A DNA stretch of 64,000 nucleotides from Octopus bimaculoides (lineage: Eukaryota), in the NCBI RefSeq assembly GCF_001194135.2, contig NC_068986.1, positions 95,758,706 through 95,822,705 of the forward strand, read 5' to 3'. Of the stretch, positions 695-60,986 are shown piece by piece. Every line of letters starts with the position of its first letter. Position 1 is the first letter of the stretch. A model generated the notes under the pieces. That model saw only the letters and a list, made by a program, of their open reading frames with translations. It was not told the DNA's origin and ran no database searches. The position numbers were made by a program, and so were the translations under genes.

Positions 695-1258
695 TTCCTT
701 TGCAAATATCAACTGATGTCTTCTCTACCCATCAGTTCTAGAATCATCTATGCTCCACCCATCATTTATCATCATTATCAATTTGCATCCACTTTTCCAT
801 GTTGGCATGGGTTGTATGGGCTGTCATAGACTGAGTCAATTCTTATTTGGGTTTACTGCCCTTCTAGACAGATCAGGAACCACACCTCATGAGTACATTC
901 CATTTTTGGTTTGTTTTCTGCAGCTGAGTGCCCTTCCTATAGTCAACCATTTTACACAGTGTACTAGGTGCATATGGTATCAGTGCTTGAGAGACTGTCA
1001 TGTCCTAAAGTTAAAATTATTTATTCTCTACAGCCTCCATATTCATATAGCATTCATATTTAATGTTATTAAACAACAACAACAACAACAAGCATAGTAA
1101 TAATTTCTTTCAGTCATACACACACGGCAACAAATTTAATGAGAAGATATAATTGATTATATTGATACTACAGTTCTATATTTAAGAGATGAGGAATTAT
1201 GTACATTATTTACATTATTTACATTTGACGGATATTTGTTCTCATCTTGTTTGTTGTT

Positions 1259-1304
1259 AACACAACGTTTCAGCTGATATACCCTCCAGCCTTCTTCAGG
1301 TGTC
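1259..1304 (-). ncRNA. Minimal type I hammerhead ribozyme (PLE-type), sense in the RNF121 pre-mRNA
   Basis: GACAC-CTGAAGA-A-GGCTG-GAGGGTATAT-CAGCT-GAAAC-GTT-GTGTT: CUGANGA and GAAA core, stem I GACAC/GTGTT, stem II GGCTG/CAGCT, palindromic ACGT minimal stem III, GUU cleavage triplet. Confidence 0.65.
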
Positions 1305-1502
1305 TTGGGGAAATTTTGAACCTGAGTTCTCATTCCTAAGGTTAGTAGTTTGCGCTCTTAACCACTACGCTATATGCTCGTGGGCATATGGCATACTAAC
1401 CCCAAGATTCCGAGTTCGATTCCAGGCAGTGACCTGAATAATAATAATAATAACATCAAAAAATACCTTAGGAATGAGAACCCAGGTTCAAAATTTCCCC
1501 AA

Positions 1503-1548
1503 GACACCTGATGAAGGCTAGAGGGTATATCAGTTGAAACGTTGTGTT
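1503..1548 (+). ncRNA. Second minimal hammerhead copy (stem II weakened)
   Basis: GACAC-CTGATGA-A-GGCTA-GAGGGTATAT-CAGTT-GAAAC-GTT-GTGTT; core intact, stem II has G.U pairs and one mismatch. Confidence 0.55.
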
Positions 1549-1883
1549 AACAACAAACAAGATGAAGACAAATATCTGTCAAATGTAAATAATGTATATT
1601 GATACTAGTACTCGACTTATTTTACCAAGCCTAGAAAGATGAATGCTGAAGTCAGCTATGATGTGATTTGAACTCAGAAGAAAGATGTAAAAACAGTGCA
1701 AATATTCTGTTCTTCACACCATTACACATAAGCAAATAATAATAATTGAATACATAACAACAGCATACAAACAATTGTAATTATATTTATATTAGGTTCC
1801 AGATATTGAAGGTGTTGCACCTGTGTGTGGAGATGAGGGCAGGACAAAACCAGGTTAGGATAAATTGATGCCAGACACGTGAT

Positions 1884-2234: not shown

Positions 2235-2606
2235 GTTGTTGCACTCCGTCGCTTACGACTTCGAGGGTTCCAGTTGATCCGATCAACGGAACAGCCTGCT
2301 AGTGAAATTAACGTGCAAGTGGCTGAGCACTCCACAGACACGTGTACCCTTAATGTAGTTCTCGGGGATATTCAGCGTGACACAGTGTGACAAGGCTGAC
2401 CCTTTGAATTACAGGCACAACAGAAACAGGAAGTAAGAGTGAGAGAAAGTTGTGGTGAAAGAGTACAGCAGGGTTCGCCACCATCCCCTGCCGGAGCCTC
2501 GTGGAGCTTCAGGTGTTTTCACTCAATAAACGCCCGGTCTGGGAATCGAAACCACGATCCTATGACCGTGAGTCCGCTGCCCTAACCACTGGGCCATTGC
2601 ACCTCC
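2235..2606 (-). mobile_element. tRNA-derived SINE (family C)
   Basis: Head GGAGGTGCAATGGCCCAGTGGTTAGGGCAGCGG...GGTTTCGATTCC; 11-bp TSD ATAGGTACAAT (2224-2234 / 2607-2617); second copy at 51710-52099. Confidence 0.85.
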
Positions 2607-3449
2607 ATAGGTACAATAAATCAGGGGGAAAAAACAATATCTAAATAAACTTACATAAAGAGCAGAAAGAAATTTGATTAATTAATAAGTACTCAGAAGG
2701 ACATAGGCTGTAAGGTGAAGGTGCTTTACTATTAATAACCACATAGATGCCAGTGCTGCTTGACTGGCACCCGTGCCAGTGGCATGTAAAATGCACCCAC
2801 TACACGCTTGGAGTGGTTGGCATTAGGAGGGGGCATCCAGCTGTAGAAACCTTGCCAAATCAGATTGGAGCCTGGTTCAGTTGCCTGGCATACCAGTTCT
2901 CAGTCAAACCACCCAATCCATGCCAGCATGGATGTGTAGATGACCAACATGCTAAAAATGGCAGCTAAATCTCTCATTGTCTTGAAAAAACAATGACACT
3001 TTGGAGAATGTGTCTTGGAAAAGGACAACATTTTGGATAATGTGATTGTGGATGTATTATCGGAGAAAAGATGGGATGTCAAGACTAGAGTTCCTCTGGT
3101 CATAGATCTGCTAGATCAGGGCTAACCTAGCATTCAATAATAACACCAAATAAACATCACTATGTTTTGTCAAAAGATGTCAATAATCACACTTTTAAAT
3201 GAATCATGTACAATGTTCTTCCAGCAAACATTGACCACCATGACAAAGATCTGATGAACCCAATGTGGAAGCATTTTTATGGTCACTTCATCTGCTAGAA
3301 ATAGCAGACAAATCTCCCTCAAAACATACTCTACCAACTTAAGAAAGTAAGAACATTTTCGATAATATAGCATATGATCTCAGGCCTGGTTGGTACCATA
3401 GCCAATACAAAAACTAAATCTATGGTGGAGAGACAATAACTGTATTTTA

Positions 3450-14379: not shown

Positions 14380-14751
14380 CACACACGCACATACAAGTGG
14401 CTAAATATGAATACAACTGTTGTATACTTATATTAAATATAGTAATACAAATAAACATCAGTCTTTGTATTTCTCCATAGACATAAAAAAAAGTGAATGT
14501 CTGACTCGAGTTTCGACTCTAATTGGAGTCTTCCTCAGAGACCATGTACATCTCATGCTGTCCACGAAGAAAGAAACAACTAATGGCATTATAAGCTCAC
14601 TAAATATTAGTAGCATCAATGCTAATTTGCATAATACTAATATGTAACTAGTAGCTTGTTCAGTTAATTACTAAACTGTGCATTGAACATATGAGCTGTA
14701 GGATGAATATGTAGCTGAACTGAAATAGCACAAGATTTAACCAAAGTTATG

Positions 14752-15210: not shown

Positions 15211-15475
15211 TATATTAGAAAAAAATAAGGTACTCAGAGATCTGGATGGTTGTACATTTACAGATTTTTATTAATATGTCACATGTTTTTTATAAATCAT
15301 ATATTAGCCCTTGCATCTATTCTAGTACAATCTCCAGATTCTACTAGATTCTGGAGATTCTACTAGAATAGATGCAAGGGCTAATATATGATTTATAAAA
15401 ACATGTGACATGTTAATAAAAATCTGTAAATGTACAACCATCCAGATCCCTGAGTACCTTATTTTTTCTAATATA
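15211..15475. repeat. Near-perfect 265-bp fold-back palindrome
   Basis: Arms 15211-15342 and 15346-15475 are reverse complements with only a few mismatches/indels; centre at 15344; left end abuts an N gap. Confidence 0.9.
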
Positions 15476-21146: not shown

Positions 21147-24009
21147 CCTTTCTGCTGAAGGCACAAGGCCTGAAATGGGGGGGGGGAGGTAAGTCAATTA
21201 TATTGACCCCAGTGCTTAACTTGTACTTATTTTACTGACACTGAAAGGATGAAAGGCAAAGTCAACCTCAGCAAAATTTGAACTCAGAATGTATAAACAA
21301 ACAGTATGCTGCTAAGCAAACTTTGGAATATTTTGGGTGACACATTAGGCTGGTCAAGCTAAATTTCCCAAGTAGTTTCCATGAAGAATGAAGTCTTCAT
21401 TATTTGTGCTCCATCCTGCCTCTCCACTGGAGCTACATCCATCCAGGAGTATGTCACTCTTAAGAAACTGTAACAATTACTGGACTTTATTTCAATATTG
21501 TTTATTATGATGGTCTTACGCACACTAAGTGTTTTAAAGTGTGGTTGGTTTTCATTTAATCATCTTCGCAAAACTAACTATTTTTCACTCTCTGAGTGGT
21601 TGGCGTTAGGAAGGGCATCCAGCTGTAGAAACTCTGCCAAATCAGATTGGAGCCTGGTGTAGCCATCTGGTTTCACCAGTCCTCAGTCAAATCGTCCAAC
21701 CCATGCTAGCATGGAAAGCGGACGTTAGATGATGATGATGATGATGATAAACTTTTTGTACTTTTGTACTTACTGTATGACAATGCACACCATCACTAGT
21801 TGCCTCAGATTCCACTGTTTTACTTTCAAATTTTAATGAGGATTAAAAATCAACTTAAGATTATGAAAAGAAATACACTAGTGGTTCACTAAACACCACC
21901 AATCACCATAAATAAAATTTTTTAACATTGGCACAAGACCACATATTTTGAGGGAGAGATATAATCAATTATATTAGCCTCAATACATGACTGGTACATA
22001 TTTTATCAACCCCAGAATGATAAAAAAAAAAGCTGATTTTGTTGGCAGCTGAACTCAGTGTGTGTACAAACAACACAACAATACTAGAAACATTTTGTCC
22101 ACTATTCTACCAACCCTACCAATCTATAACCTTGCATTAATTATGAATAGTAAGTTTCTTTTGTGATGAGCCCTTAAACTTGTAGGTGAAAGAAGTAGGA
22201 AATGGTGAGATAGATGTGTGACTTTCCCAATAATACCAGTAAAATAGACCAAATTTCTTCAACTTGGAATTATATCCAAGTTTCTGACCTAGTTTAACAG
22301 AAACTTACAGATTCAAAATAAGTATCCTCCACCAACCAAAAGCAATGATATTAGTTATTTTGAGCAAAAGCTTTTTGTTAAAGGTCTTTAATCCATTTGT
22401 AAAACCAAACCATATTACATACCTCATTTAGTTTATAATGGGTCTCAGGATAGTGATGGCGCATTCTGTAGGGTTTCTTGTTGGATTGTGAAAATAAATC
22501 ACCTTTAGACTTTGTCCAGCTCCAAATCCTAAACTCTCAAGAATAAAACACTATACGCTTGTGTGAATGTGATATCTACCTGTATGGCAAACAACAGCAC
22601 CAAAACAATACTTATTTTATAAAATAGCATTAAACAACTGCTGTGTAGACTTATCCAATCAATACAAGAATTAAAGAAAATAATTGTATTCAATTCACTT
22701 ATCTATGCTGTGTTGTTTAATCTCAAGCAGTCATAATAAAATAGACCTATGATCAAGAACATTCCAACCATAGTCATTCTGCCACTTTTTTTTTTACCAG
22801 ATATAGTATACTGTGGACTAATTATCCAATGTATGGGTTTTTTTCTAAGATGACAGAGAGGTTTGAGGGTGACTTGGCTGCACTTTCTAGAAGACTGAAT
22901 AGAAATACAGAGATGTTGATATAGAGGCCAATAAGAGAGATGCTATATAAACTATTTGTCTAGTTAAAATTTTCAGGAAAGAATGTATATGGTTGAATCA
23001 AACTTAGAACATAACCAATACTTAGTTTAGCCTGGTCGAATAAAAGATTTTGAATTCAGTATATAAAAAAAAACATAACTACAAAGCATTTAGACCAATA
23101 CTATCATGACTTTCAGTCCACCGTCCTTCTTGTTCTGCCAAACAATCATTTGATATAAGTCCATTTTTTAACTGGACTGGATCTTTCAAAGTCTAGTTCT
23201 TTGGATTAGCTTCTGCAACATTTCTAGCAATAATAGCTGTTGGTAAGCTTCATAAGATGGAAAATATTTTTTGGTGATGTTCTTACTCTACCAGAATATG
23301 AAGAAGACATGACAAGTGAGAGGTATCAACCATGTCAACCAATCATTACAGTGAGAATAGTTATATTTAGTATATGTTATATAGTATTACTATTAGTAGC
23401 AGTAGTCAGTAGAAGGGTTAACTTGCTGACAACAGGATTTACAATAATAGTTATATGTAGTGATACCTAATACATAGCAGAGGGTGTGTGTATGTGTTTA
23501 TGTGTAAGAGAAACACAGGCAGAAAGACTAACACTTATTCACATATTGACAACATATAACAGTAATGACAAAAAAAAAAAAAAATCCCCAACAGGTGTGA
23601 TTTGTGAAACAGAATCCACAGTGAAACTGCAATAGTAATTTGTAGCTATTCAGAGTAGTTGAAGCAACTTCAGACTAGTTAACCATAAACATCAACTATG
23701 ATTGAAATGAAACAGATGTGCAGCTGAGCAAATAATTAAGTCAGTTCACAAGCTCACAGCTTATTCCCCTCAATCAATATGGGGAGTCGATCTTCTCAAT
23801 AGTAAAATAAAATCTGAAGTTGAAAGAAACTAATGATGGCCTGCAACAACAAAAACTATTTAGTGACACTCTTAAATTTGAATGAGTTTATATGCTGTGG
23901 GTGGTTCAAGCAAAGCCCTTTATCATGCCTACATGTCATTCAAAGTTATCTAAATTTATAAACTATCTTAAATGTCTATATTTCTGAGATGAGAGATTTA
24001 TATTTTGTA

Positions 24010-24639
24010 CAGTAAACACTCGCCATATCGCGGTTCACCTATTGTGTCCTCAGTACATCATGGATTTTTCTGGCTAATATATGTAAATTCATATCACGGA
24101 CTCCTCAGTATATCGCGAGTTTCTGCGGCTGGTAGGCATTTATACCTTTTTAGATTTTAATTATTTCTGTGGTAAAATAAGCATTTTCATGCTTAAAAAT
24201 TAATAAATTAATAAATAAAAATACAGTAAAGTACTGCACTGTATAACACGTTAATTAAAATACAGTAATCCCTTGACTATCATGGGTATTACATTACAAA
24301 ATATCCAGAAAAATCCGTGATGTACTGAGTGCACGATAGATGAACCATGATGTACTGAGTGTGTGATAGGTGAAGTGCAATATGGTGAGGTAATTGTGTA
24401 TATCGAAAGAAAATATGTAGTGTACTGTAGATGAGTAAACAAAGAAGCACACATACTGTATGCCAAATGAAACTCAGGAGGTGAATGTGAGGTATTGTTT
24501 TGCATTTATAATAAAATAAACATATACAAATGATAAAAGAAATAAAAAGAGAATATACAGTACTGTTTCTACTTTGCAGATTTTTACCTATTGTGTGTGT
24601 GGGGGGGACGTAGCACCCACAATAGTCAAGAGATTACTG
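24010..24639. mobile_element. pogo/Tigger-like MITE
   Basis: TA|CAGTAAACACTCGCCATATCGCGG ... CACAATAGTCAAGAGATTACTG|TA: degenerate TIRs with TA TSD; no ORF. Confidence 0.6.
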
Positions 24640-26121
24640 TACATTGTTTATATTAGTCAGACTGGTGTCACACTTTGATTGCTGCTTTCACTACATTACA
24701 GCTGTTGTATGCGCCAGCCTTCTATATAACTTAAATTCATGAACAGTAGCTGTAGTAGCAATGGGTTACATAGAAGTGAAATCATGGTCAGTTCATAAAA
24801 GACAGTGACAATCAGATATTTTGATGGACTAAATAGTATTGTCAATGGAGAAGGTAGAGATATTCATAAATCTAAATTGGGTATTTTAATGTGACACTTT
24901 ATTACCTCAATTTACAAGCAACTGAGATAACATACTAGACCTGAATAAGTATGTTGTGACATTAACATCATATCCAAATGAGACAGTTGCTATTCATCCA
25001 CTGAATGTCATAAAAAAAACTCTGGCTAAACTTTAGGCCAATGATCTCTTGAGATTTACACTGGGTATAATACATAAGGACATAAATAAAATATATAAAA
25101 ACTATACCAGAGTTTACAACTTTATTACAGTCTGAAAAAATAATCCTGACTGACAAAGCACACAGCACAGATAAACAAACATTTTCCCTTTCCCTCCAAA
25201 AGACAATACTATAAACACCTCAAGATCATACAGGTGTACATAGTCATGTGGCTAAAAACTAACATGCAACTATTGAAAACACTTAATAATAAACATAATA
25301 ATTATTTCTAACATAGGGATAAGGCCACAAATTTGATGGGGTTAGTCGATTGAATTAACCCCAGTACTTGACTGGTAATTTAGTTTTGTCTACTCCATAA
25401 GGATAAAAGGAAAAGTTGATTTGGATGAAATTTAAACTCAGAACATAAGATACATAACTAAAGACTACAGGTATTTTGTCCTGTTCTAACAGCTCTGCCA
25501 ATCCACCAGACCTTAAAAATAGTAATAATTGTTTCTAACTTAGGTAGAAGGCCAGAAATTTAGGAATAGGAAGTTAATCAATTAAAATGACTCAAGACAT
25601 AAGTGGTACTTTATTTTACCAAACATGGAAGGATAAAAGGTAAAGTAGATCTTGGTGAGATCTGAACTCAGAACATAAAGACAAGAAGGAATACCACAAA
25701 CATTTTGCCTGATGCTCTAATAAACAGCTTTTTTTGATTATTTAAAGAACTGTGAATCTCATGATCCACTTTTTGCATCTTATGTCTTCAGTCTGGGTTC
25801 ATCCTTCCTTTTCTGGGTCTTCTTTCTTTTGTGGTTGTCTCTGACAATTTGTTATTCTTCTCCAACTTTCATATATACCCCATCATTTCAAGTCAATAGA
25901 CTTGAGCCTATTCAGGTAGACCTTTTGATACAATATCCTAGTGATGAGCACAGAACAGATTTTTTCCTGATGGTATTCTGGAAACGGTAGTTTCTGGGAC
26001 CTGCTGTTATATTCTTGCCACTACTGCAGTCTGCTGCTTTCCTCCTTTCTTTGCTTTTTCAGCTTCTCAAGGAGAAATCCCCCAACAAGCTCTGAGAACT
26101 ACAAGTGGGATTTCGGCCTTG

Positions 26122-27021
26122 CATCATCATCATCATCATCATCATCGTTTAACGTCCGCTTTCCATGCTAGCATGGGTTGGACGATTTGACTGAGGACTG
26201 GTGAAACCGGATGGCAACACCAGGCTCCAGTCTGATTTGGCAGAGTTTCTACAGCTGGATGCCCTTCCTAACGCCAACCACTCAGAGAGTGTAGTGGGTG
26301 CTTTTACGTGTCACCCGCACGAAAACGGCCACGCTCGAAATGGTGTCTTTTATGTGCCNNNNNNNNNNNNNNNNNNNNNNNNNNNNNNNNNNNNNNNNNN
26401 NNNNNNNNNNNNNNNNNNNNNNNNNNNNNNNNNNNNNNNNNNNNNNNNNNNNNNNNNNNNNNNNNNNNNNNNNNNNNNNNNNNNNNNNNNNNNNNNNNNN
26501 NNNNNNNNNNNNNNNNNNNNNNNNNNNNNNNNNNNNNNNNNNNNNNNNNNNNNNNNNNNNNNNNNNNNNNNNNNNNNNNNNNNNNNNNNNNNNNNNNNNN
26601 NNNNNNNNNNNNNNNNNNNNNNNNNNNNNNNNNNNNNNNNNNNNNNNNNNNNNNNNNNNNNNNNNNNNNNNNNNNNNNNNNNCTTCTCACGCACAGCCCA
26701 TTTCCAAAGGTCTCGGTCCGTAGTCATCGCCTCGGTGAGGCCCAATGTACGAAGGTCTTGCCTCACCACCTCAGCCCAAGTCTTCCTGGGCCTACCTCTT
26801 CCACGGGTTCCCTCAACTGTTAGGGTGTGGCACTTTTTCACGCAGCTATCCTCCTCCATTCTCACCACATGTCCATACCAGCGCAATCGTCTCTCTTGCA
26901 CGCCACAACTGATGCTTCTAATGTTCAGCTTTTTCTCTCAAGACTTCTAATGTTCAGCTTTTCTCTCAAGACTTCTAATGTTCAGCTTTTCTCTCAAGAT
27001 GCTTCTAATGTTCAGCTTTTC
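26122..27021 (-). mobile_element. 5'-truncated RTE LINE (RT C-terminus + 3'UTR), with internal gap
   Basis: QERRLRWYGHVVRMEEDSCVKKC..VEGTRGRGRPRKTW..VVRQDL (typical RTE C-terminus), colinear with the (GAT)n-tailed repeat at 26122-26358. Confidence 0.9.
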
Positions 27022-32214: not shown

Positions 32215-32448
32215 GCCTTTTTAAAGCCTAGCCAGGCTCATGGGCCTGGTTTCAATGGCATATGTGTTCCCCAGCTGGACGGGAAGCCAGTCCATCGCAG
32301 CGTTACTCATTTTTGCCAGCTGAGTGGACTGGAGCAACGTGAAATGAAGTGTTTTGCTCAAGAACACAACGCATCGCCCGGTCCAGGAATCGAAACCACA
32401 ATCTTACGATCATGGTGCTGACACTCTATCCACTAAACCACGCGCCTC
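32215..32448 (-). mobile_element. tRNA-derived SINE with CORE-like body
   Basis: Head GAGGCGCGTGGTTTAGTGG...GGTTTCGATTCC; body TGTGTTCTTGAGCAAAACACTT; T-rich tail on the + strand. Confidence 0.75.
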
Positions 32449-36115: not shown

Positions 36116-37002
36116 CAGGGTGTGGTGAATAAACTGTCGTCTAAATTACGCAAAAATGAAAATAACACTGACATCTCATTTTAACAGATATGTTTACCAA
36201 AATTAGATAAAAATATCTTGAAATGCTAAAGAGCAAATTTATTCAATAAAATTGCCATTGGCTTCAACCATTGCTTCTAAACAACTTTGGAATCTCTTGC
36301 AATTCTTCTGGACAGTCTCCTTGTTTAAGCTGGTAAATGTTGCCATAATACTTGTCTTCAGTTCATCTTTGGTGTTACAAGGAGTTTTGTTGGTCTCTCG
36401 CTCAACTGTGCCCCACACATAATAATCAAGGGGGTTGCAGTCTGGGGAGTTAGGTAGCCAAATGTTAGGGATGATGAGGTTGCAGAAATTGTCTGACAGC
36501 CATGACTGGGTTCTCCTGCTTGTGTGGCATGGTGCAGAGTCCTGTTGCCAGACAGGTTGTTCCAGCAACCAGCATCTTGATCCAGGGCAGTACTACCTCC
36601 TCCAGGCACTTGATGTAGGCATCCATGTTGAGTCTGAGGCTGTGTGGGAAGATAAATGTAGGTATAATGTCACCATCACTAGTGATCACTCCAAACACCA
36701 TGATGTTGACTGGATATTTGATTTTTATTACTTTGAGTACATGTTTTGGGGAGACGGCAAGCCAACGGTTGTTCTGTGTGTTCCCCGTCTGTTCGTATTG
36801 GAGCTTCTGGCATGAATGCCAAGAAGTACAGCATGTCATTTCCAAATTTCTGGCAGAGTGAATTGCGTCATGATGCTGTTGTTTTCACAGACAGTACCCT
36901 ACTGACCCTACTATGCTGTGTAGTTGACAAAATCACAAAAAAACAATGCATATGTGTAAAATCAAAAATATAAAATGGTGACAATTTACCCATCACACCC
37001 TG
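36116..37002 (-). mobile_element. Non-autonomous Tc1/mariner (maT, DD37D-type) element
   Basis: TA TSD, TIR CAGGGTGTG. The translation QQDSAPCH...PNSPDCNPLDYYVWG has 37 residues between the last two Asp; internally deleted and frameshifted. Confidence 0.9.
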
Positions 37003-37006
37003 TATA

Positions 37007-37048
<42 letters not shown>

Positions 37049-39401
37049 TATATATATTGTGCCGGTGGTACGTAAAAAGCACCCACTACACTCTCGGTGT
37101 GGTTGGTGTTAGGAAGGGCATCCAGCTGTAGAAACTCTGCCAGATCAGATTGGAGCCTGGTGCAGCCATCTGGTTCACCAGTCCTCAGTGAAATCGTCCA
37201 ACCCATGCTAGCATGGAAAGCGGACGTTAAATGATGATGATGATGATATGATGGATTCTCCCATTGATTTCAATGTGTCCAGTGGCCATTGTGATCAACT
37301 CATTGAATTACCACATGAAGTGGGTAACTATTCCAGGATTGGAATATTGATACATCCTAGCTTAATGTGACAAAGCTGAACTTTTCAATTACAGTTACAG
37401 TCTATCTAGCAGGCTTCTCAGGTTCTTTCTACCTAAATTCACTAAAAAGGTTTGGGTTGTCAACATGCCATGCATTAGGATCAAGCCCAGGACCTCGTGG
37501 TTGCAGAGTGAACATCTTAACAACTCAACCAAGCCTGTATTTAATGTGTGTGTGTGTGTGAGAGGGGAGAGGGAGGGAGAAGGAGAGAGAGAACAAATAA
37601 AAGGTGAGTGAGTTGTATCTATATTTGCTTGTAAAAAAAAATAATAGAGTATCGCTCTTGCTGCACTGCATATACAAACACTCTTAGCCTTATCACAAAA
37701 AGTGCCACCTTTGGCTCACCAACGACCTCCAATCTCTAGCCCCCAGACAAGCTGTACCTCCTGCATTTCTAAAACTATTATATAGGTCCCTGTTTTTCAG
37801 TTCTTAACAGTCCTGTATCAACTTCACCCAGGCCCACCTGACTTACATGTCTCCCATCATCGCCAAAAATGTGTCTACCACCCCCTCTCATCAGGCACCA
37901 CACTGTCACACTTTTCAATCCTTCCTCTTGACAAAAGTACTTTTTAAAAAGAGGGTCTGTGGTAGGATTCTGGGTTTTACATGTTCTATTTAAGATTTCA
38001 AACATACTGTTCTTGTTTTAAAAAAGGGAAATTTAAAAAGAAAACAAGATCTTATTGTTAACTTTTGCACAAGTACTGTCAGTGAATTAGACACAGATCG
38101 GAACTGATACAACAGACCTTTGATCAAACCATTCAAAAATTGGACCAAACGATTTGTTTTTCACCTTTTTTCAAGTCTATCGCATCTAGGACTACATTAT
38201 CATATTGGTTCTTTCATTTTTTAAAACAGTAGGTCATGGTCAGGTCGAGGAACCACACATAAGTCCCCTTGTCGACTTGTGTTATTATAGTAGTTTAGCT
38301 ACAGGTCAACCTTGACCAGGTCTGTCTACGTAGGCTAGTGTTTAAAAATAAAACGAATGGTGGAAGCTAATCAACTTTCAAAACTGTCAAACAGGATTGT
38401 CGACTTTCAGTTTAATTGACAGTTTATAAACCAGGTGAGCCGAAAGTATTTGCTTCATAGATTGACACTCCTGAAATATTTTGTCTGTAGGAAGAGTCCA
38501 TCTATCCTGGTTGGAACCCTTTCACTACCTACATTGTATGAAATGTATGAAAAATCACAACTCATACCCACTTGCTTCTCCATAAAAAGGTTCTACGCTT
38601 ACGTGAGCAAGAATCGAATATTTGCATTCAATAGAACGATGAAGTTATTGTTGAGTTCCAGATCAGTCCTGATGAAGCAAACTTATGATCAAAGACCGTG
38701 TCCATTTTTTTTTTCCGGACAAGAACACATTTAGCTGTTACTTTTAGCAAGTCGAGTAACCGTATAGAGGTTCCCTGTCAACTTCACTGCTATGCCAGAA
38801 TGGTAAAGTTTGTGCAGACGGCAAAGGGTCTTGGTGAATGATGTTCAATGTCCGAGATCAAAGTAACTCAGTCCGAATCGATATTAAGTACCAGTTAGAA
38901 CATGAGTCGACTCGATTGCTCATACATTATCCTACTACAAAATCGTATTAATTCTCAGGCAAGGAAATCGATATTATTTACATAGTCACATGGAGAGTGA
39001 TTCAGATTGTCTCCAAGGTTCTACCAGGGTTCTACCAGTTATACCAGGGTTTAGCGCTGCTTCTTTATTCTTCCATGGTTCGATTAAAAGTTCCAGTGTT
39101 CCATTCAATAAACTATAACCGCAATTTTTTTTTTAACAACACAAACTTCTTGTTTACTCAAAGAAAGACTTTTCTTTTAAGGAAATTATTATTTACATAT
39201 GCAGACGGAAAGAGAAAGAGCCAGGACAGTACTACATGGACAAAGTGAGTGTCGGTAGGAGTAGGGTTAAAAACGACATTAGAGCATAACTTCAAATCTG
39301 CAATTCTAACAGAACACAACATATTTGTGTGTTATGAAAGTGTCAGAAATAATCTGCACTAGAATTTGATACGAAAATCGCCAGTATTCATTTTTACTCA
39401 C

Positions 39402-51709: not shown

Positions 51710-52099
51710 TTGTTATTGTTGTTGGCACTCTGTCGCTTACGACGTCAAGTGTTCCAGTTGATCCGATCAATGGAACAGCCTGCTCGTGAAATTAACGTGC
51801 AAGTGGCTGAGCACTCCACAGACACGTGTACCCTTAACGTAGTTCTCGGGGATATTCAGCGTGACACAGTGTGACAAGGCTGACCCTTTGAATTACAGGC
51901 ACAACAAAAACAGGAAGTAAGAGTGAGAGAAAGTTGTGGTGAAAGAATACAACAGGGTTCGCCACAATCCCCTGCCGGAGCCTCGTGGAACTTTAGGTGT
52001 TTTCGCTCAATAAACACTCACGACGCCTGGTCTGGGAATCAAAACTGCGATCCTATGACTGCGAGTCCGCTGCCCTAACCACTGGGCCATTGCGCCTCC
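51710..52099 (-). mobile_element. tRNA-derived SINE (family C), second copy
   Basis: Highly similar to 2235-2606; 11-bp TSD ACTTAACTAAT (51699-51709 / 52100-52110). Confidence 0.85.
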
Positions 52100-52466
52100 A
52101 CTTAACTAATACTTATCTAGTATTAACGAACTGTACAATTACTTGTGAGAGAGTCTCTACATGGCTGCTTGACTTGATAGAAATAAAAGCCACATTATAT
52201 ACTTTTATCTTAAATTTACCTACATTAGATAATGTAGTCCAACATACTCATTAAAAAGTAAGATGGTCACAGCTGGACTGCTTTTGATCATAGGTCTGAT
52301 GAATATCAGGGTTGACCTGGGGTGAAACAACAATGACACTACCAGCATCTACCTGACTGCTTCACCTTCTAGAAATAACAGCCTAATCTTTTTTTTAAAT
52401 TACACTCTAATGCTTAAAAGAAAGAAGAAACACATTAGATGATGTAGTCCTAGATATATTCTATAA

Positions 52467-52724: not shown

Positions 52725-55260
52725 TTGTATAAGACAAGTTGATCATGGCTGGGTTAAGGCTTATGTTGGACTACACACAACATAACAACAACCTGAAGTA
52801 AATATGTTTTGATACATCAGACATGTTTACACATGCTACACTGTTTGGTTACTATGCAGTATAGCGTTCCAGATATAATATTTATCTGGAGCATCATACA
52901 TAAGAGAAAACTGTGAGAAGTAGTGTGACCAAGATTCTCTTCATCCTTGGAGAGTTTAACAAACTCATTCAATAAGAAATTTGACCTTAGGAACAACTTC
53001 ACGTAAATGAGTGAGTGTTTATATAAGAAGTTTCATTTTATTTTTTGTTCAGTGAAATACAATTCATTATCAATTCATTTCTTTATTGTTGTAGTGCACA
53101 TGAGCACTATACACAATAATTTCATTATATTATAATATTTATTGTGTGTATCCTGGTTTTAAAATAAGTAACCATTTTTTGCATGCATAAGAGGTAACAG
53201 GAAGGGCATTGGGCCTTAAAACACTGCTTCAGAGAAACTATCATCATCATCGTTTAACGTCCGCTTTCCATGCTAGCATGGGTTGGACGATTTGACTGAG
53301 GACTGGTGAAACCGGATGGCAACACCAGGCTCCAGTCTGATTTGGCAGAGTTTCTACAGCTGGATGCCCTTCCTAACGCCAACCACTCAGAGAGTGTAGT
53401 GGGTGCTTTTACGTGTCACCCGCACGAAAACGGCCACGCTCGAAATGGTGTCTTTTATGTGCCACCCGCACAAGCCAGTCCAGGGGCACTGGCAACGATC
53501 TCGCTCGAAAATCCTACGGGAGCCAGTCAGGCGGTACTGGCAACGGCCACGCTCAATATCTAATTCACACATAATCATGATATCATTAATTTCTGTTTAT
53601 CATCATCATTGTCATCACCATCATTATCATTTTATGTCTACTTTCTGTACTGGCATGAGTTGGATGATTCAAAATGATCCAACAAATTGCAGGACTGCAT
53701 CGTGCTCCAGTTTTTTTTTAGTTTGGAGATAGTTTTTTACAGCTGAATGCCCTTCCTAATGCTAACCACTTTATGGTGTGTATTGGGTGCTGCTTTTTCC
53801 ATGCCACCAGTACTAGCAAGGTCATCTTGTTACTCAGAAGACAACCCCCGCCAACTCAAAGGAGAATAGGAGAGACAGAGAGTGATGACAAAGGGCAAAG
53901 TATGATGAGAGAAACAGATTTATGGACAAGAGAATTTGAAATTCATTTTATCACTTTCTTTTTTCTTTTTTTTTTATATTTTACAAATACATTAAATTCT
54001 TTGTCATCCCCAGTTTTAATAACAATTGTTATATTTCAAAACAAGAATGGTCTGGTGCTAAATAACAATGCATAACATACAAGGTAAGGATACAATAACC
54101 TCAATTAAAGTACTGGAGTACTGACCATATATAGTTATAATTTCAAATCTTTTTACTGTGTTGTGTTTCTGAATAAAGTTTCTAATTCTGTTTGCTCCAA
54201 TTTGTACTACTGAACCAAAGTAAGTGCCAATCCTTTTTCACATTTGAAGTGGGCTAGTTCTGGGGAGATCCGTACAGCTGCAAAAACAATTGCTCTAACA
54301 AATAATCCCGCTTATGTAAGCTAGGAAAATTGTATATTGTTGTTGATTAAGCAAACCTATGATGAGCGACATTCCAACCATGGTAATCCTGTCTTTTTAA
54401 AAGTTTCTAGAACTAAATCATCTAGTGTACCCTTTTTTCTTGAAAACTGGATGCTACTTCTAGCAGTTTGAGCAACTATGCAGAGACTCCCTTGGGAAAA
54501 TGCAAAACTAATAATAATAATAATCCTTTCTACTATAGGCACAACACTTGAAATTTTTTTTGGAGGAGCGATAGTCAATTACATAGATCCCCAGTGCATA
54601 ACTGGTACTTATTTAATCAACCCCGAAAGGATGAAAGACAAAATCAACCTCAGTAGAATTTGAACTCAGAACATAAAAAGAGATGAAATGCTATTAAGCA
54701 TTTTACCTAGCATGCTAATGATTCTGCCTGGTCTTCACCATAGCAGCAGCAGCAGTAGCAGTAGTAGTAGTAGTAGTAGTAGTAATAGTAGTAGTTGTAG
54801 GGATTTGTCCTATTGGCAAGGGTCATAGATTGCTAGAAGCAGACATAGTTTGCTGAACTAAACTTAAGACCTGTCTATGTGGTCACTCAACCTGCTAGAA
54901 ATAGCAGTCAGATCTTAAATCATTCTCCAAAATCTTAAATACAAGAAGATACATTAGAAAATGTCATGCTAGATACCCCTAAAAAAAAACAGGATCATCC
55001 AGTCAAAATGCCATATTTCTATCTTTTAGTCAGGCGGGGAGGTAGTGCCTGTGACCCTTCACAGAGCTTCTGAGATTAGCAGGTGGAAGAGGAGAAAGTA
55101 TCCTCAAATCGAAGCCCTGACCTAAATGCTTGCAATGTAGTGGACTAAGGGCACCCAATGTACAAGGTGATGGTTTTAAACCAGGTGACAGATTAACTCT
55201 ACCACCCAAGTGCCCATTGCAGGATTTGAATTCAGAATACAAAGAGCCAGAACAAATATT

Positions 55261-59482: not shown

Positions 59483-60798
59483 GAACTAGTGATAGATGAC
59501 TAAATGTCACAAGAATGTCATTTATAGATGAACACAGACAGATAAACACTTAAGTTGACATCTCCAGCCCACCCTCCTCTCAATTTACACCTCCATTGTC
59601 TCTTTTCACAACACCCCTCACCCATTACACACCTGTAAGAATGATTTCAGAACATTAACTCTTTGGCATCATTTCACACTTATCTCACCTACATGGGTGG
59701 GTAGAGTAAGTAGTAAGAAAGAGAAAGAGAGGAAGGGAAAGTATAAAAGAACTGGAGAAAAAGAGAGGCATGAGCATGAGGAAAGAAAAAGAGAGAGAGA
59801 TTGAGAGAAGATTAAAAGAGTCTCAAGATACAGTTAGATTGGTAGAGCAACTAGGATGTCTGTATGTTGTGTGCACATTATATATATATATATATATATA
59901 TCATCATCATCATCATCATCATCGTTTAACGTCCGCTTTCCATGCTAGCATGGGTTGGACGATTTGACTGAGGACTGGTGAAACCGGATGGCAACACCAG
60001 GCTCCAGTCTGATTTGGCAGAGTTTCTACAGCTGGATGCCCTTCCTAACGCCAACCACTCAGAGAGTGTAGTGGGTGCTTTTACGTGTCACCCGCACGAA
60101 AACGGCCACGCTCGAAATGGTGTCTTTTATGTGCCACCCGCACNNNNNNNNNNNNNNNNNNNNNNNNNNNNNNNNNNNNNNNNNNNNNNNNNNNNNNNNN
60201 NNNNNNNNNNNNNNNNNNNNNNNNNNNNNNNNNNNNNNNNNNNNNNNNNNNNNNNNNNNNNNNNNNNNNNNNNNNNNNNNNNNNNNNNNNNNNNNNNNNN
60301 NNNNNNNNNNNNNNNNNNNNNNNNNNNNNNNNNNNNNNNNNNNNNNNNNNNNNNNNNNNNNNNNNNNNNNNNNNNNNNNNNNNNNNNNNNNNNNNNNNNN
60401 NNNNNNNNNNNNNNNNNNNNNNNNNNNNNNNNNNNNNNNNNNNNNNNNNNNNNNNNNNNNNNNNNNNNNNNNNNNNNNNNNNNNNNNNNNNNNNNNNNNN
60501 NNNNNNNNNNNNNNNNNNNNNNNNNNNNNNNNNNNNNNNNNNNNNNNNNNNNNNNNNNNNNNNNNNNNNNNNNNNNNNNNNNNNNNNNNNNNNNNNNNNN
60601 NNNNNNNNNNNNNNNNNNNNNNNNNNNNNNNNNNNNNNNNNNNNNNNNNNNNNNNNNNNNNNNNNNNNNNNNNNNNNNNNNNNNNNNNNNNNNNNNNNNN
60701 NNNNNNNNNNNNNNNNNNNNNNNNNNNNNNNNNNNNNNNNNNNNNNNNNNNNNNNNNNNNNNNNNNNNNNNNNNNNNNNNNNNNNNNNNNNNNNNNNN

Positions 60799-60986
60799 GA
60801 ATGGACGTCAGTGATTGGTTGAAATTATAGAAATGCGACAACTTTAACATGGAATAACTTAGGGATTTCTTTGTTTTTTAAGAAGATTAAGAGAAAAAGA
60901 TGTTTTATATGACACATTCTACCAGTGTTCCAAGTTTCAAAGTGTTTCGTTAATGAAAAATGTGGCCCCCGTTTTAAAAAAGATCC
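60799..60986. mobile_element. Isolated TIR of the same long-TIR element
   Basis: Reverse complement of 55261-55450 and similar to 55932-56123; the rest is hidden in the N gap. Confidence 0.75.

Follow-up and report, generated by a model that had tools for sequence, protein, structure and literature searches.

A fossil head-to-head insertion in Octopus bimaculoides joining a tRNA-like head to a minimal-hammerhead tail and bearing the signature of Penelope-type integration

What kind of mobile element leaves behind two head-to-head units, each coupling a tRNA-like head to a tail with a minimal hammerhead motif, and does such a combination amount to a new class of SINE? These questions are raised by a 424-bp insertion at 1171-1594 of a 64-kb stretch of the Octopus bimaculoides genome, the whole of which was analyzed and is referred to here as the window. 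The window is AT-rich (34.9% GC) and belongs to a draft assembly with many gaps (3034 N). A first-pass annotation had interpreted the locus as a Pol III-driven element mobilized by the enzymes of a Penelope-like element (PLE), with ends defined by ribozyme cleavage and, by implication, an inverted arrangement related to dimer-acting ribozymes, and had proposed a possibly undescribed class. The analysis presented here leads to a narrower account. The locus is very likely a PLE-type insertion, and we put the probability at roughly 60% that it is a fossil left by a PLE reverse transcriptase (RT) and GIY-YIG endonuclease acting in trans on a short non-coding RNA.

A repeat search delimited the insertion as a mobile element abutted exactly by a perfect 13-bp duplication, in agreement with the earlier reading of a retroposed insertion with a target-site duplication (TSD). 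Inverted arms at 1208-1342 and 1465-1599 were recovered by repeat search as well, spanning 135 nt at 94% complementarity, and the composition of the two units, a tRNA-like head followed by a hammerhead-bearing tail, is as had been described (Table 1). Both units start with GCATAT(A/G)GC and face each other across a small central palindrome, ATATGC-TCGTGG-GCATAT, at 1372-1389. When the units are aligned in their own orientations, the 3' module common to both extends from ACCTTAGGAATGAG... to ...AAATGTAAATAATG and contains 8 substitutions. The heads carry different deletions, another feature of the first-pass annotation that holds: compared with the minus arm, the plus arm is missing about 20 nt of the A-box/D-arm region, while the minus arm is missing 63 nt comprising the B box and the A/T-rich linker, with ACC microhomology at the deletion edges. 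An assembly artefact is ruled out by the 8 substitutions and the two different deletions between the arms. Because the TSD flanks the whole dimer, the dimer was formed at integration.

The two ends of the element are not inverted repeats of each other, as 33-42 extra nucleotides are present at one end only; the range given for this one-sided extension reflects the possible registers of a 9-nt TAAATAATG duplication. The plus arm halts at a 2-nt TA found in both element and target, as would fit internal priming. The 3' end of the element has neither poly(A) nor a simple repeat, and no RT or GIY-YIG ORF was found within the element. The locus is now dead, a fossil insertion.

Table 1. Features of the insertion and its flanks, in window coordinates.
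Feature	Position	Strand	Basis
Left target-site duplication, TATATTGATACTA	1158-1170		Exact 13-nt direct repeat of 1595-1607 (13/13)
Minus-unit 3' module (tail), hammerhead included	1171-1339	-	Inverted-repeat arm; arm alignment
One-sided 3' extension of minus unit, without counterpart in plus unit	1171-1207	-	Arm alignment
Minimal type I hammerhead motif, better-preserved copy	1259-1304	-	Descriptor; predicted cleavage between 1264 and 1263
Minus-unit tRNA-like head, 5' half: acceptor-like GCATATAGC, D arm, anticodon-loop-like ACTAACC	1340-1377	-	Sequence reading; alignment
Pol III A box, TAGCGTAGTGG	1362-1372	-	Exact match to TRGCNNAGTGG
Center of symmetry: 6-nt spacer TCGTGG between unit 5' ends (ATATGC / GCATAT)	1378-1383		Sequence reading; hairpin loop in fold
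Plus-unit tRNA-like head: GCATATGGC, ~20-nt deletion of A box/D arm, ACTAACC, T arm with B box	1384-1434	+	Alignment
Pol III B box, AGTTCGATTCC (T-loop TTCGATT)	1413-1423	+	One mismatch to GGTTCGANNCC
A/T-rich linker TGA(ATA)5ACATCAAAAAATA, head to tail; plus unit only	1435-1465	+	Sequence reading; arm alignment
Plus-unit 3' module (tail)	1466-1594	+	Arm alignment; stops 33-42 nt before the 3' end of the family
Minimal hammerhead motif, decayed copy	1503-1548	+	Descriptor; predicted cleavage between 1543 and 1544
Right target-site duplication, TATATTGATACTA	1595-1607		Same 13-nt direct repeat

The tRNA-derived character of the head is most readily seen when the two arms are read together. Each extant arm retains one promoter box, the A box in the minus arm and the B box in the plus arm, and neither has both; the 63-nt deletion has left the minus-unit head with no T arm, B box or linker. 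The A-box consensus TRGCNNAGTGG has three matches in the window against 0.58 expected, and the remaining two lie within clear heads of tRNA-derived SINEs. On the plus strand, the sequence continues as ...ACTAACC CCAAGATTCCGAGTTCGATTCCAGGCAGTGACC, the B box with its one mismatch included, and the head closes with an acceptor-like CAGTGACC. Joining the two extant heads at their common ACTAACC yields a composite, and thus a reconstruction of the full head, that is 73 nt in length and has its A box at 8 and its B box at 52, for an A-to-B spacing of 44 nt. The claim that the two heads complement each other is supported to the extent that the putative composite head, judged by its sequence, has the canonical A/B-box geometry of a tRNA. 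In comparison to the head of the abundant tRNA-SINE of the window (2300-2640 and 51800-52110), the composite head scores z=5.9, a score that none of 2000 shuffles reaches; by blastn, the head of the element has no match to the abundant SINE families of the window.

Dedicated tRNA detectors are silent on this head. ARAGORN found no tRNA in the window or in the composite head, and the Rfam tRNA model has no match at the gathering threshold or at E<=10. However, both equally miss a positive-control SINE head at 2540-2610, so their silence is uninformative. By inspection, the composite does not form a tRNA cloverleaf: the acceptor and anticodon stems are unpaired, the T stem retains three of its five pairs and only the D stem is intact. 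A T4 terminator run is absent from the sense strand, but as a sign of Pol III this absence is not significant, as 49% of shuffles also have none. A degenerate second tRNA half was considered for the 5' portion of the tail (TTAGGAATGAG...GACACC, with GGTTCAAAATT inside it) and rejected, since this portion has no significant similarity to tRNA 3' halves.

The 5' ends of both arms coincide with the start of the tRNA-like head, at about tRNA position 2. Two arms ending at the same tRNA-like 5' end are expected if a full-length transcript starting there was copied, and the common end argues against a randomly 5'-truncated autonomous PLE.

Minimal hammerhead ribozymes, in which helix III is lacking, have been defined for Penelope-like elements (Cervera and de la Pena, 2014; PMC4209133). 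The window was searched with an explicit descriptor of such motifs, which reads in order helix I (minimum 4 bp), CUGANGA, at most one unpaired nucleotide, helix II (minimum 4 bp), GAAA, a self-complementary stretch A...U and U-H. This descriptor matches the window at three places and has no match in 300 shuffles that preserve dinucleotides. Two of the three are the arms of the element, with predicted cleavage at 1543/1544 (+) and 1264/1263 (-), which reproduces the sites predicted by the first-pass annotation. The third, at 14503-14538(-), is unrelated and of textbook PLE type, indicating independent occurrence of PLE-type hammerhead motifs in this genome.

In both arms, the core boxes and the cleavage triplet are present (CUGAUGA or CUGAAGA, GAAA and G-U-U), helix I is the 5-bp GACAC/GUGUU, and an unpaired A precedes helix II. 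The segment A15.1-C-G-U16.1 reads ACGU and is self-complementary, giving the palindromic 15.2-16.2 positions that would allow an intermolecular helix III in a dimer. In contrast to the published, highly conserved G10.1-C11.1 pair, G10.1 stands opposite U11.1 as a wobble in both arms. The better-preserved, minus-arm motif is laid out as GACAC / CUGAAGA / A / GGCUGG-loop-UCAGCU / GAAA-CG-U-U, followed by GUGUU, and the minimum free energy (MFE) fold of the isolated 56-nt region (-11.1 kcal/mol) consists of exactly helix I (5 bp; GACAC/GUGUU) and helix II (6 bp; GGCUGG/UCAGCU), with both core boxes unpaired. In the plus arm, an A.C mismatch and an additional G.U pair weaken helix II, which is reduced to 4 bp, and the MFE favors an alternative fold. 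In a check against covariance models, the Rfam hammerhead models have no match at the gathering threshold or at E<=10; the absence of a helix III hairpin may be the reason that these models miss the motif.

Relatives of the tail are few. A spurious 58-aa ORF of the element has a single UniProt match, the O. bimaculoides protein P0001 (80% identical); no other protein-database entry is related to an ORF of the element, and the match is in keeping with the cephalopod attribution of the first-pass annotation. P0001 is paralogous and encodes the sequence of the one-sided extension (...VHNSSSLKYRT), so this extension is element sequence. Within the window, blastn and nhmmer found no second copy of the element, only a distant relative of the tail at 24630-24723 (E=4.4e-7) with no adjoining head. 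A weak match was also seen at 23975-24045, probably to another repeat. Besides the distant relative, P0001 is the only other copy recovered, and it covers the tail alone; because it starts at an ATG just downstream of the head-tail junction, it is uninformative on the junction rather than negative. The two relatives lend no covariation support to the hammerhead, as both break the motif: read at the protein level, P0001 implies uncompensated changes of C15.2 to A and of G at 1.3 to A, and the 24630-24723 relative keeps the helix II stems and is missing both core boxes. No autonomous PLE sharing the tail was found within the window, nor any related tail beside an RT there. Searches further afield returned no exact 23-mer match in metagenome DNA. 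A degenerate hammerhead pattern hit one GC-rich metagenomic contig of bacterial origin, and an antisense ORF across head and tail hit only an FN3 repeat in a representative protein search; both were set aside as chance matches.

PLE insertions are often accompanied by an immediately adjacent, inverted and 5'-truncated copy (Craig et al., 2021; PMC8557442), and further hallmarks of PLEs are a tail of 30-40 bp at one end only, variable TSD length and hammerheads in the terminal repeats (PMC8557442; Evgen'ev and Arkhipova). The octopus locus has all the corresponding features, namely an inverted adjacent copy, a one-sided tail, a 13-bp TSD and a pair of hammerhead motifs on opposite strands; of the variability in TSD length, a single locus gives one value only (13 bp). 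The Penelope connection drawn in the first-pass annotation is supported by this published integration signature; ribozyme-set ends, an implied dimer role for the inversion and a new class are not supported.

We infer that the unit was transcribed by Pol III and mobilized in trans by a PLE. The template would have been a unit of about 275 nt, as reconstructed, made up of the 73-nt tRNA-derived head, the 31-nt A/T-rich linker and a Penelope-type 3' module of about 170 nt, in which the minimal, helix-III-less type I hammerhead would be followed by about 93 nt of terminal sequence. Target-primed reverse transcription would have produced the head-to-head inverted double copy, either through priming from both nicked target strands or through snap-back of a single cDNA, with both arms copied up to the 5' end of the RNA (GCATAT...). 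The same event would have generated the 13-bp target duplication and the terminal extension on one side only. Later decay would account for the losses from the near-palindromic center, about 20 nt with the A box in one arm and 63 nt with the B box and linker in the other, as well as for the lost helix II pairing of the plus-arm hammerhead. The hammerhead would have been carried along in a 3' module recognized by the PLE enzyme, with the ends of the insertion not being set by it.

The proposal that ribozyme cleavage defines the ends is contradicted by their positions. Beyond the predicted cleavage sites, the element continues for another 51 nt in the plus arm and 93 nt in the minus arm, and its 5' ends fall at the start of the tRNA-like head, where there is no cleavage site. 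Nor can the inverted arrangement be tied to dimer-acting ribozymes: since the two motifs lie on opposite strands, no single transcript has both, and the two cannot pair within one transcript. A read-through transcript of the inverted dimer is predicted to fold into a hairpin of -239 kcal/mol that buries the motif. With opposite-strand motifs leaving one motif per transcript, buried in this hairpin, the inverted dimer is a by-product of PLE-type integration and not a functional unit. Published minimal hammerheads cleave weakly and as dimers only, and are inactive as monomers (PMC4209133). By analogy, the octopus hammerhead probably stays uncleaved in a monomeric transcript; given the reported inactivity of monomers, the 3' module would not be lost from a monomeric Pol III transcript. 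A SINE relying on this module would need it to remain attached to the monomeric transcript.

Whether the template belonged to a SINE family or was assembled once is a further question. The head-tail junction has been seen at one locus only, and the proposal of a new SINE class depends on that single locus. The head-tail combination may represent a true multi-copy SINE family, for which we see somewhat less than an even chance, and we propose only tentatively the fuller form of this reading, an octopus multi-copy SINE in which a tRNA-derived Pol III head is joined to a hammerhead-bearing 3' module borrowed from a PLE and recruiting the RT/GIY-YIG enzyme. Alternatively, the locus could be a one-off chimeric retrocopy, for which a PLE RT would have started at the 3' end of an RNA from a PLE or a PLE derivative, switched template at ...CCTTAGG to the 3' end of an unrelated, small tRNA-derived Pol III RNA with an (AAT)n/A-rich tail and copied this RNA to its 5' end, after which snap-back would have given the inverted dimer; no SINE family would then share the junction. 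The internal (AAT)5...A6 right after the tRNA-like 3' end does resemble a retroposon tail, although composite SINEs with internal A-rich linkers are common and the linker is compatible with a family. Template switching lands on acceptor 3' ends, and PLEs have been reported to retrotranspose host sequences in trans; the donor of the head, however, is not among the abundant SINE families of the window. While the other copies (P0001 and 24630-24723) attest the tail only, P0001, beginning where it does, cannot weigh against the family. If the dimer did arise by snap-back, its two arms are one witness of the junction and not two. We regard the one-off chimera as an unlikely origin.

It is considerably less probable that the locus is a plain pair of heavily 5'-truncated autonomous PLE copies whose tRNA-like stretch is part of a PLE 3' UTR or pLTR. 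Most genomic minimal hammerheads have been reported in truncated PLEs, some of them on opposite strands 100-700 bp apart, and the inverted arrangement and one-sided tail are generic PLE features. However, the tRNA-like 5' end lies only a few nucleotides from where either arm stops, which would be a coincidence under random truncation, and the A and B boxes, their 44-nt spacing and the head length of 73 nt favor a genuine tRNA-derived module, a kind of module that is not reported for PLE 3' ends in the PLE literature examined. Least credible of all, in our assessment, is a tRNA SINE mobilized by a LINE and later duplicated in inverted form, with a hammerhead-like motif arising by chance, or else a DNA transposon, MITE or foldback element. 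LINEs and SINEs of tRNA origin abound in octopus genomes, but the element lacks the poly(A) or simple-repeat 3' end of a LINE-mobilized copy, the TSD encloses the whole dimer rather than a single unit, and a chance hammerhead is opposed by the absence of descriptor matches in the 300 shuffles and by the independent PLE-type motif in the same window. Long inverted repeats give the locus a superficial similarity to foldback elements and MITEs, whose ends would be mutual inverted repeats, in contrast to the 33-42 extra nucleotides on one side here. The TSDs of cut-and-paste transposons are typically about 2-10 bp, shorter than the 13 bp found here, and it is on the asymmetric ends and the 13-bp TSD that a DNA transposon or MITE was rejected.

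The preferred reading, trans-mobilization of a short non-coding RNA by PLE enzymes, invites comparison with several known systems. The locus resembles PLE insertions with minimal hammerheads in their pLTRs in its inverted adjacent copy, its one-sided tail of 30-40 bp and its TSD, and it shares with the hammerheads themselves the short helix I, the extra nucleotide before helix II and the palindromic 15.2-16.2 positions. Pairs of minimal hammerheads on opposite strands, 100-700 bp apart, have been described (Cervera and de la Pena, 2014; PMC4209133), and the two octopus motifs likewise lie on opposite strands a few hundred bp apart. Unlike autonomous PLEs, the octopus element has no RT/GIY-YIG coding sequence; unlike published PLE insertions, its units start with a tRNA-derived head bearing Pol III boxes; and unlike the G10.1 of PLE minimal hammerheads, its G10.1 pairs with U and not C.

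The closest precedent is provided by the schistosome Sm-alpha and Sj-alpha SINE-like elements, in which a hammerhead lies downstream of a Pol III promoter (Ferbeyre et al., 1998, and Laha et al., 2000, as summarized in PMC6765202). The octopus unit has the same promoter-then-ribozyme order. The schistosome hammerheads are canonical type I ribozymes shown to cleave multimeric transcripts, in elements that are often in tandem, whereas those of the octopus are of the helix-III-less PLE type and inverted; the octopus element is also set apart by the PLE-type 3' module of about 93 nt after its cleavage site and by its occurrence in the phylum Mollusca. The element can therefore not be counted as an Sm-alpha element, which is defined by a canonical type I hammerhead with helix III and loop-loop contacts that is active on multimeric transcripts, and by tandem arrays: its motif lacks helix III and has no Rfam Hammerhead_1 match, and its units are inverted.

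Metazoan non-LTR retrozymes are direct tandem repeats with type I hammerheads that give rise to circular RNAs (PMC7229834), and are now argued to derive from pLTRs (bioRxiv 10.64898/2026.07.22.740005), while MRC1 of Chlamydomonas is a non-autonomous PLE derivative (PMC8557442). Like these elements, the octopus unit is a short, non-coding carrier of a type I hammerhead for which mobilization by PLEs through similarity to PLE ends is proposed. Descriptions of retrozymes and MRC1 mention neither a tRNA-like head nor a Pol III promoter, whereas the octopus unit has a tRNA-like head, and in place of the direct tandem repeats of retrozymes it has a single pair of inverted units with hammerheads on opposite strands. 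The suggestion of a possibly undescribed class consequently loses ground on two sides, since SINE-like elements with a Pol III promoter and a hammerhead are already known from schistosomes, and non-autonomous PLE derivatives from retrozymes and MRC1. If an octopus family exists, it fits these known kinds and is not a new class.

Among octopus elements, the natural comparison is with the classical tRNA-derived SINEs OK, OR1 and OR2 (Ohshima and Okada, 1994) and with the abundant tRNA-SINE of the window. Like these, the unit has a head of tRNA origin, with canonical spacing of the A and B boxes as seen in the composite. It differs from them in the sequence of its head, the lack of a CORE-type body, a PLE-type hammerhead tail instead of a LINE-type tail, and its PLE-type integration signature. 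In a full-text literature search, no description was found of a PLE-mobilized tRNA SINE or of a hammerhead-bearing cephalopod SINE, and sequence strings of the element were likewise not found. Active Penelope families have been reported in octopus genomes, as have 893 unclassified SINE families among the recently active elements of O. vulgaris.

Should the locus be a one-off chimera or a truncated PLE, it would be an ordinary fossil insertion. If the family reading is true, it would establish a SINE-PLE partnership analogous to the SINE-LINE pairs, and the first to be defined by sequence outside the schistosome Sm-alpha case. The mechanism of PLE transposition and the role of the hammerhead in it are still unclear in the literature, and such a partnership would make it possible to separate what the PLE hammerhead does from the coding functions. 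A Pol III-driven passenger with the PLE 3' module alone would reveal the cis sequences needed by the PLE enzyme, and would show that a minimal hammerhead can travel without defining RNA ends. Additionally, it could help to place some of the SINEs that make up the large unclassified fraction in octopus genomes.

The second minimal hammerhead in the window has the layout GUCU CUGAGGA A GACUC-caauua-GAGUC GAAA CUCGAG U C|AGAC, with ACUCGAGU as its helix III palindrome. It is housed in a unique segment of ~330 bp (~14420-14750) flanked by (TA)n/(CA)n microsatellites on one side and by an N gap on the other, and this segment probably corresponds to the 3' terminus of a Penelope-like element (PLE) that is truncated and belongs to another family than the inverted tRNA-headed element at 1171-1594.

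Features of the window by coordinates and strand
Feature	Position	Strand	Detail
PLE-type minimal hammerhead	14503-14538	-	textbook form; independent of element 1171-1594
Distant tail relative	24630-24723	-	nhmmer E=4.4e-7
Near-perfect palindrome	15220-15467		directly adjoins N gap
Abundant tRNA-derived SINE	2300-2640	-	GGAGGYGCAATGGCCCAGTGGTTAGGGCAGCGGACTC...GGTTTCGATTCCCAGACC...
Abundant tRNA-derived SINE	51800-52110	-	GGAGGYGCAATGGCCCAGTGGTTAGGGCAGCGGACTC...GGTTTCGATTCCCAGACC...
Abundant tRNA-derived SINE	near 32386	-	GGAGGYGCAATGGCCCAGTGGTTAGGGCAGCGGACTC...GGTTTCGATTCCCAGACC...
Repeated element, spurious ORFs MKPDGNTRLQSDLAEFLQLDALPNANHSESVVGAF... / MLLRVTRTKTATLEMVSFMC...	26201-26950
Same	36868-37206	-
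Same	53403-53732
Same	59978-60814
Mariner/Tc1-like transposase remnant	36239-36845	-	…WLPNSPDCNPLDYYVWG… in ORF translation
LINE reverse-transcriptase C-terminal remnant	26350-26901	-	…RLRWYGHVVRMEED… in ORF translation

The distant relative of the element's tail keeps the helix II stems GGCUG/CAGCU, while both of its hammerhead core boxes are changed (UAUAGA and GUAA), and no tRNA-like sequence lies upstream of it. Close by, ATAGTCAAGRGATTACTGTA occurs in inverted copies (24255-24285 and 24617-24645), suggesting that this relative may sit within another repeat. A further paralog of the tail, P0001 (UniProt A0A0L8FV75_OCTBM), is an O. bimaculoides 'uncharacterized protein' of 51 aa, homologous to 1157-1333(-) and 80% identical to a spurious ORF there whose reading frame spans the element's hammerhead and tail. 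Rather than a gene, this entry most likely represents a copy of the repeat that was wrongly annotated.

The palindrome, with inner arms (15287-15343 and 15345-15401) matching at 96% and outer arms (15220-15290 and 15397-15467) at 97%, may be a further inverted-repeat insertion or a feature of the assembly. The abundant tRNA-derived SINE has canonically spaced A and B boxes and a long body; the head tested, at 2540-2610, was missed by both ARAGORN and the Rfam tRNA model. At least one of the two spurious peptides is encoded at each of the four repeated-element loci, three of which are broken by N gaps. The mariner/Tc1-like and LINE remnants were identified by eye alone from ORF translations.

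RNA read across 1171-1594 from either strand is predicted to fold into a near-perfect dsRNA stem of ~135 bp (-239 kcal/mol). Octopus is known for heavy RNA editing, and the predicted stem, if transcribed, would be the kind of substrate that ADAR edits.
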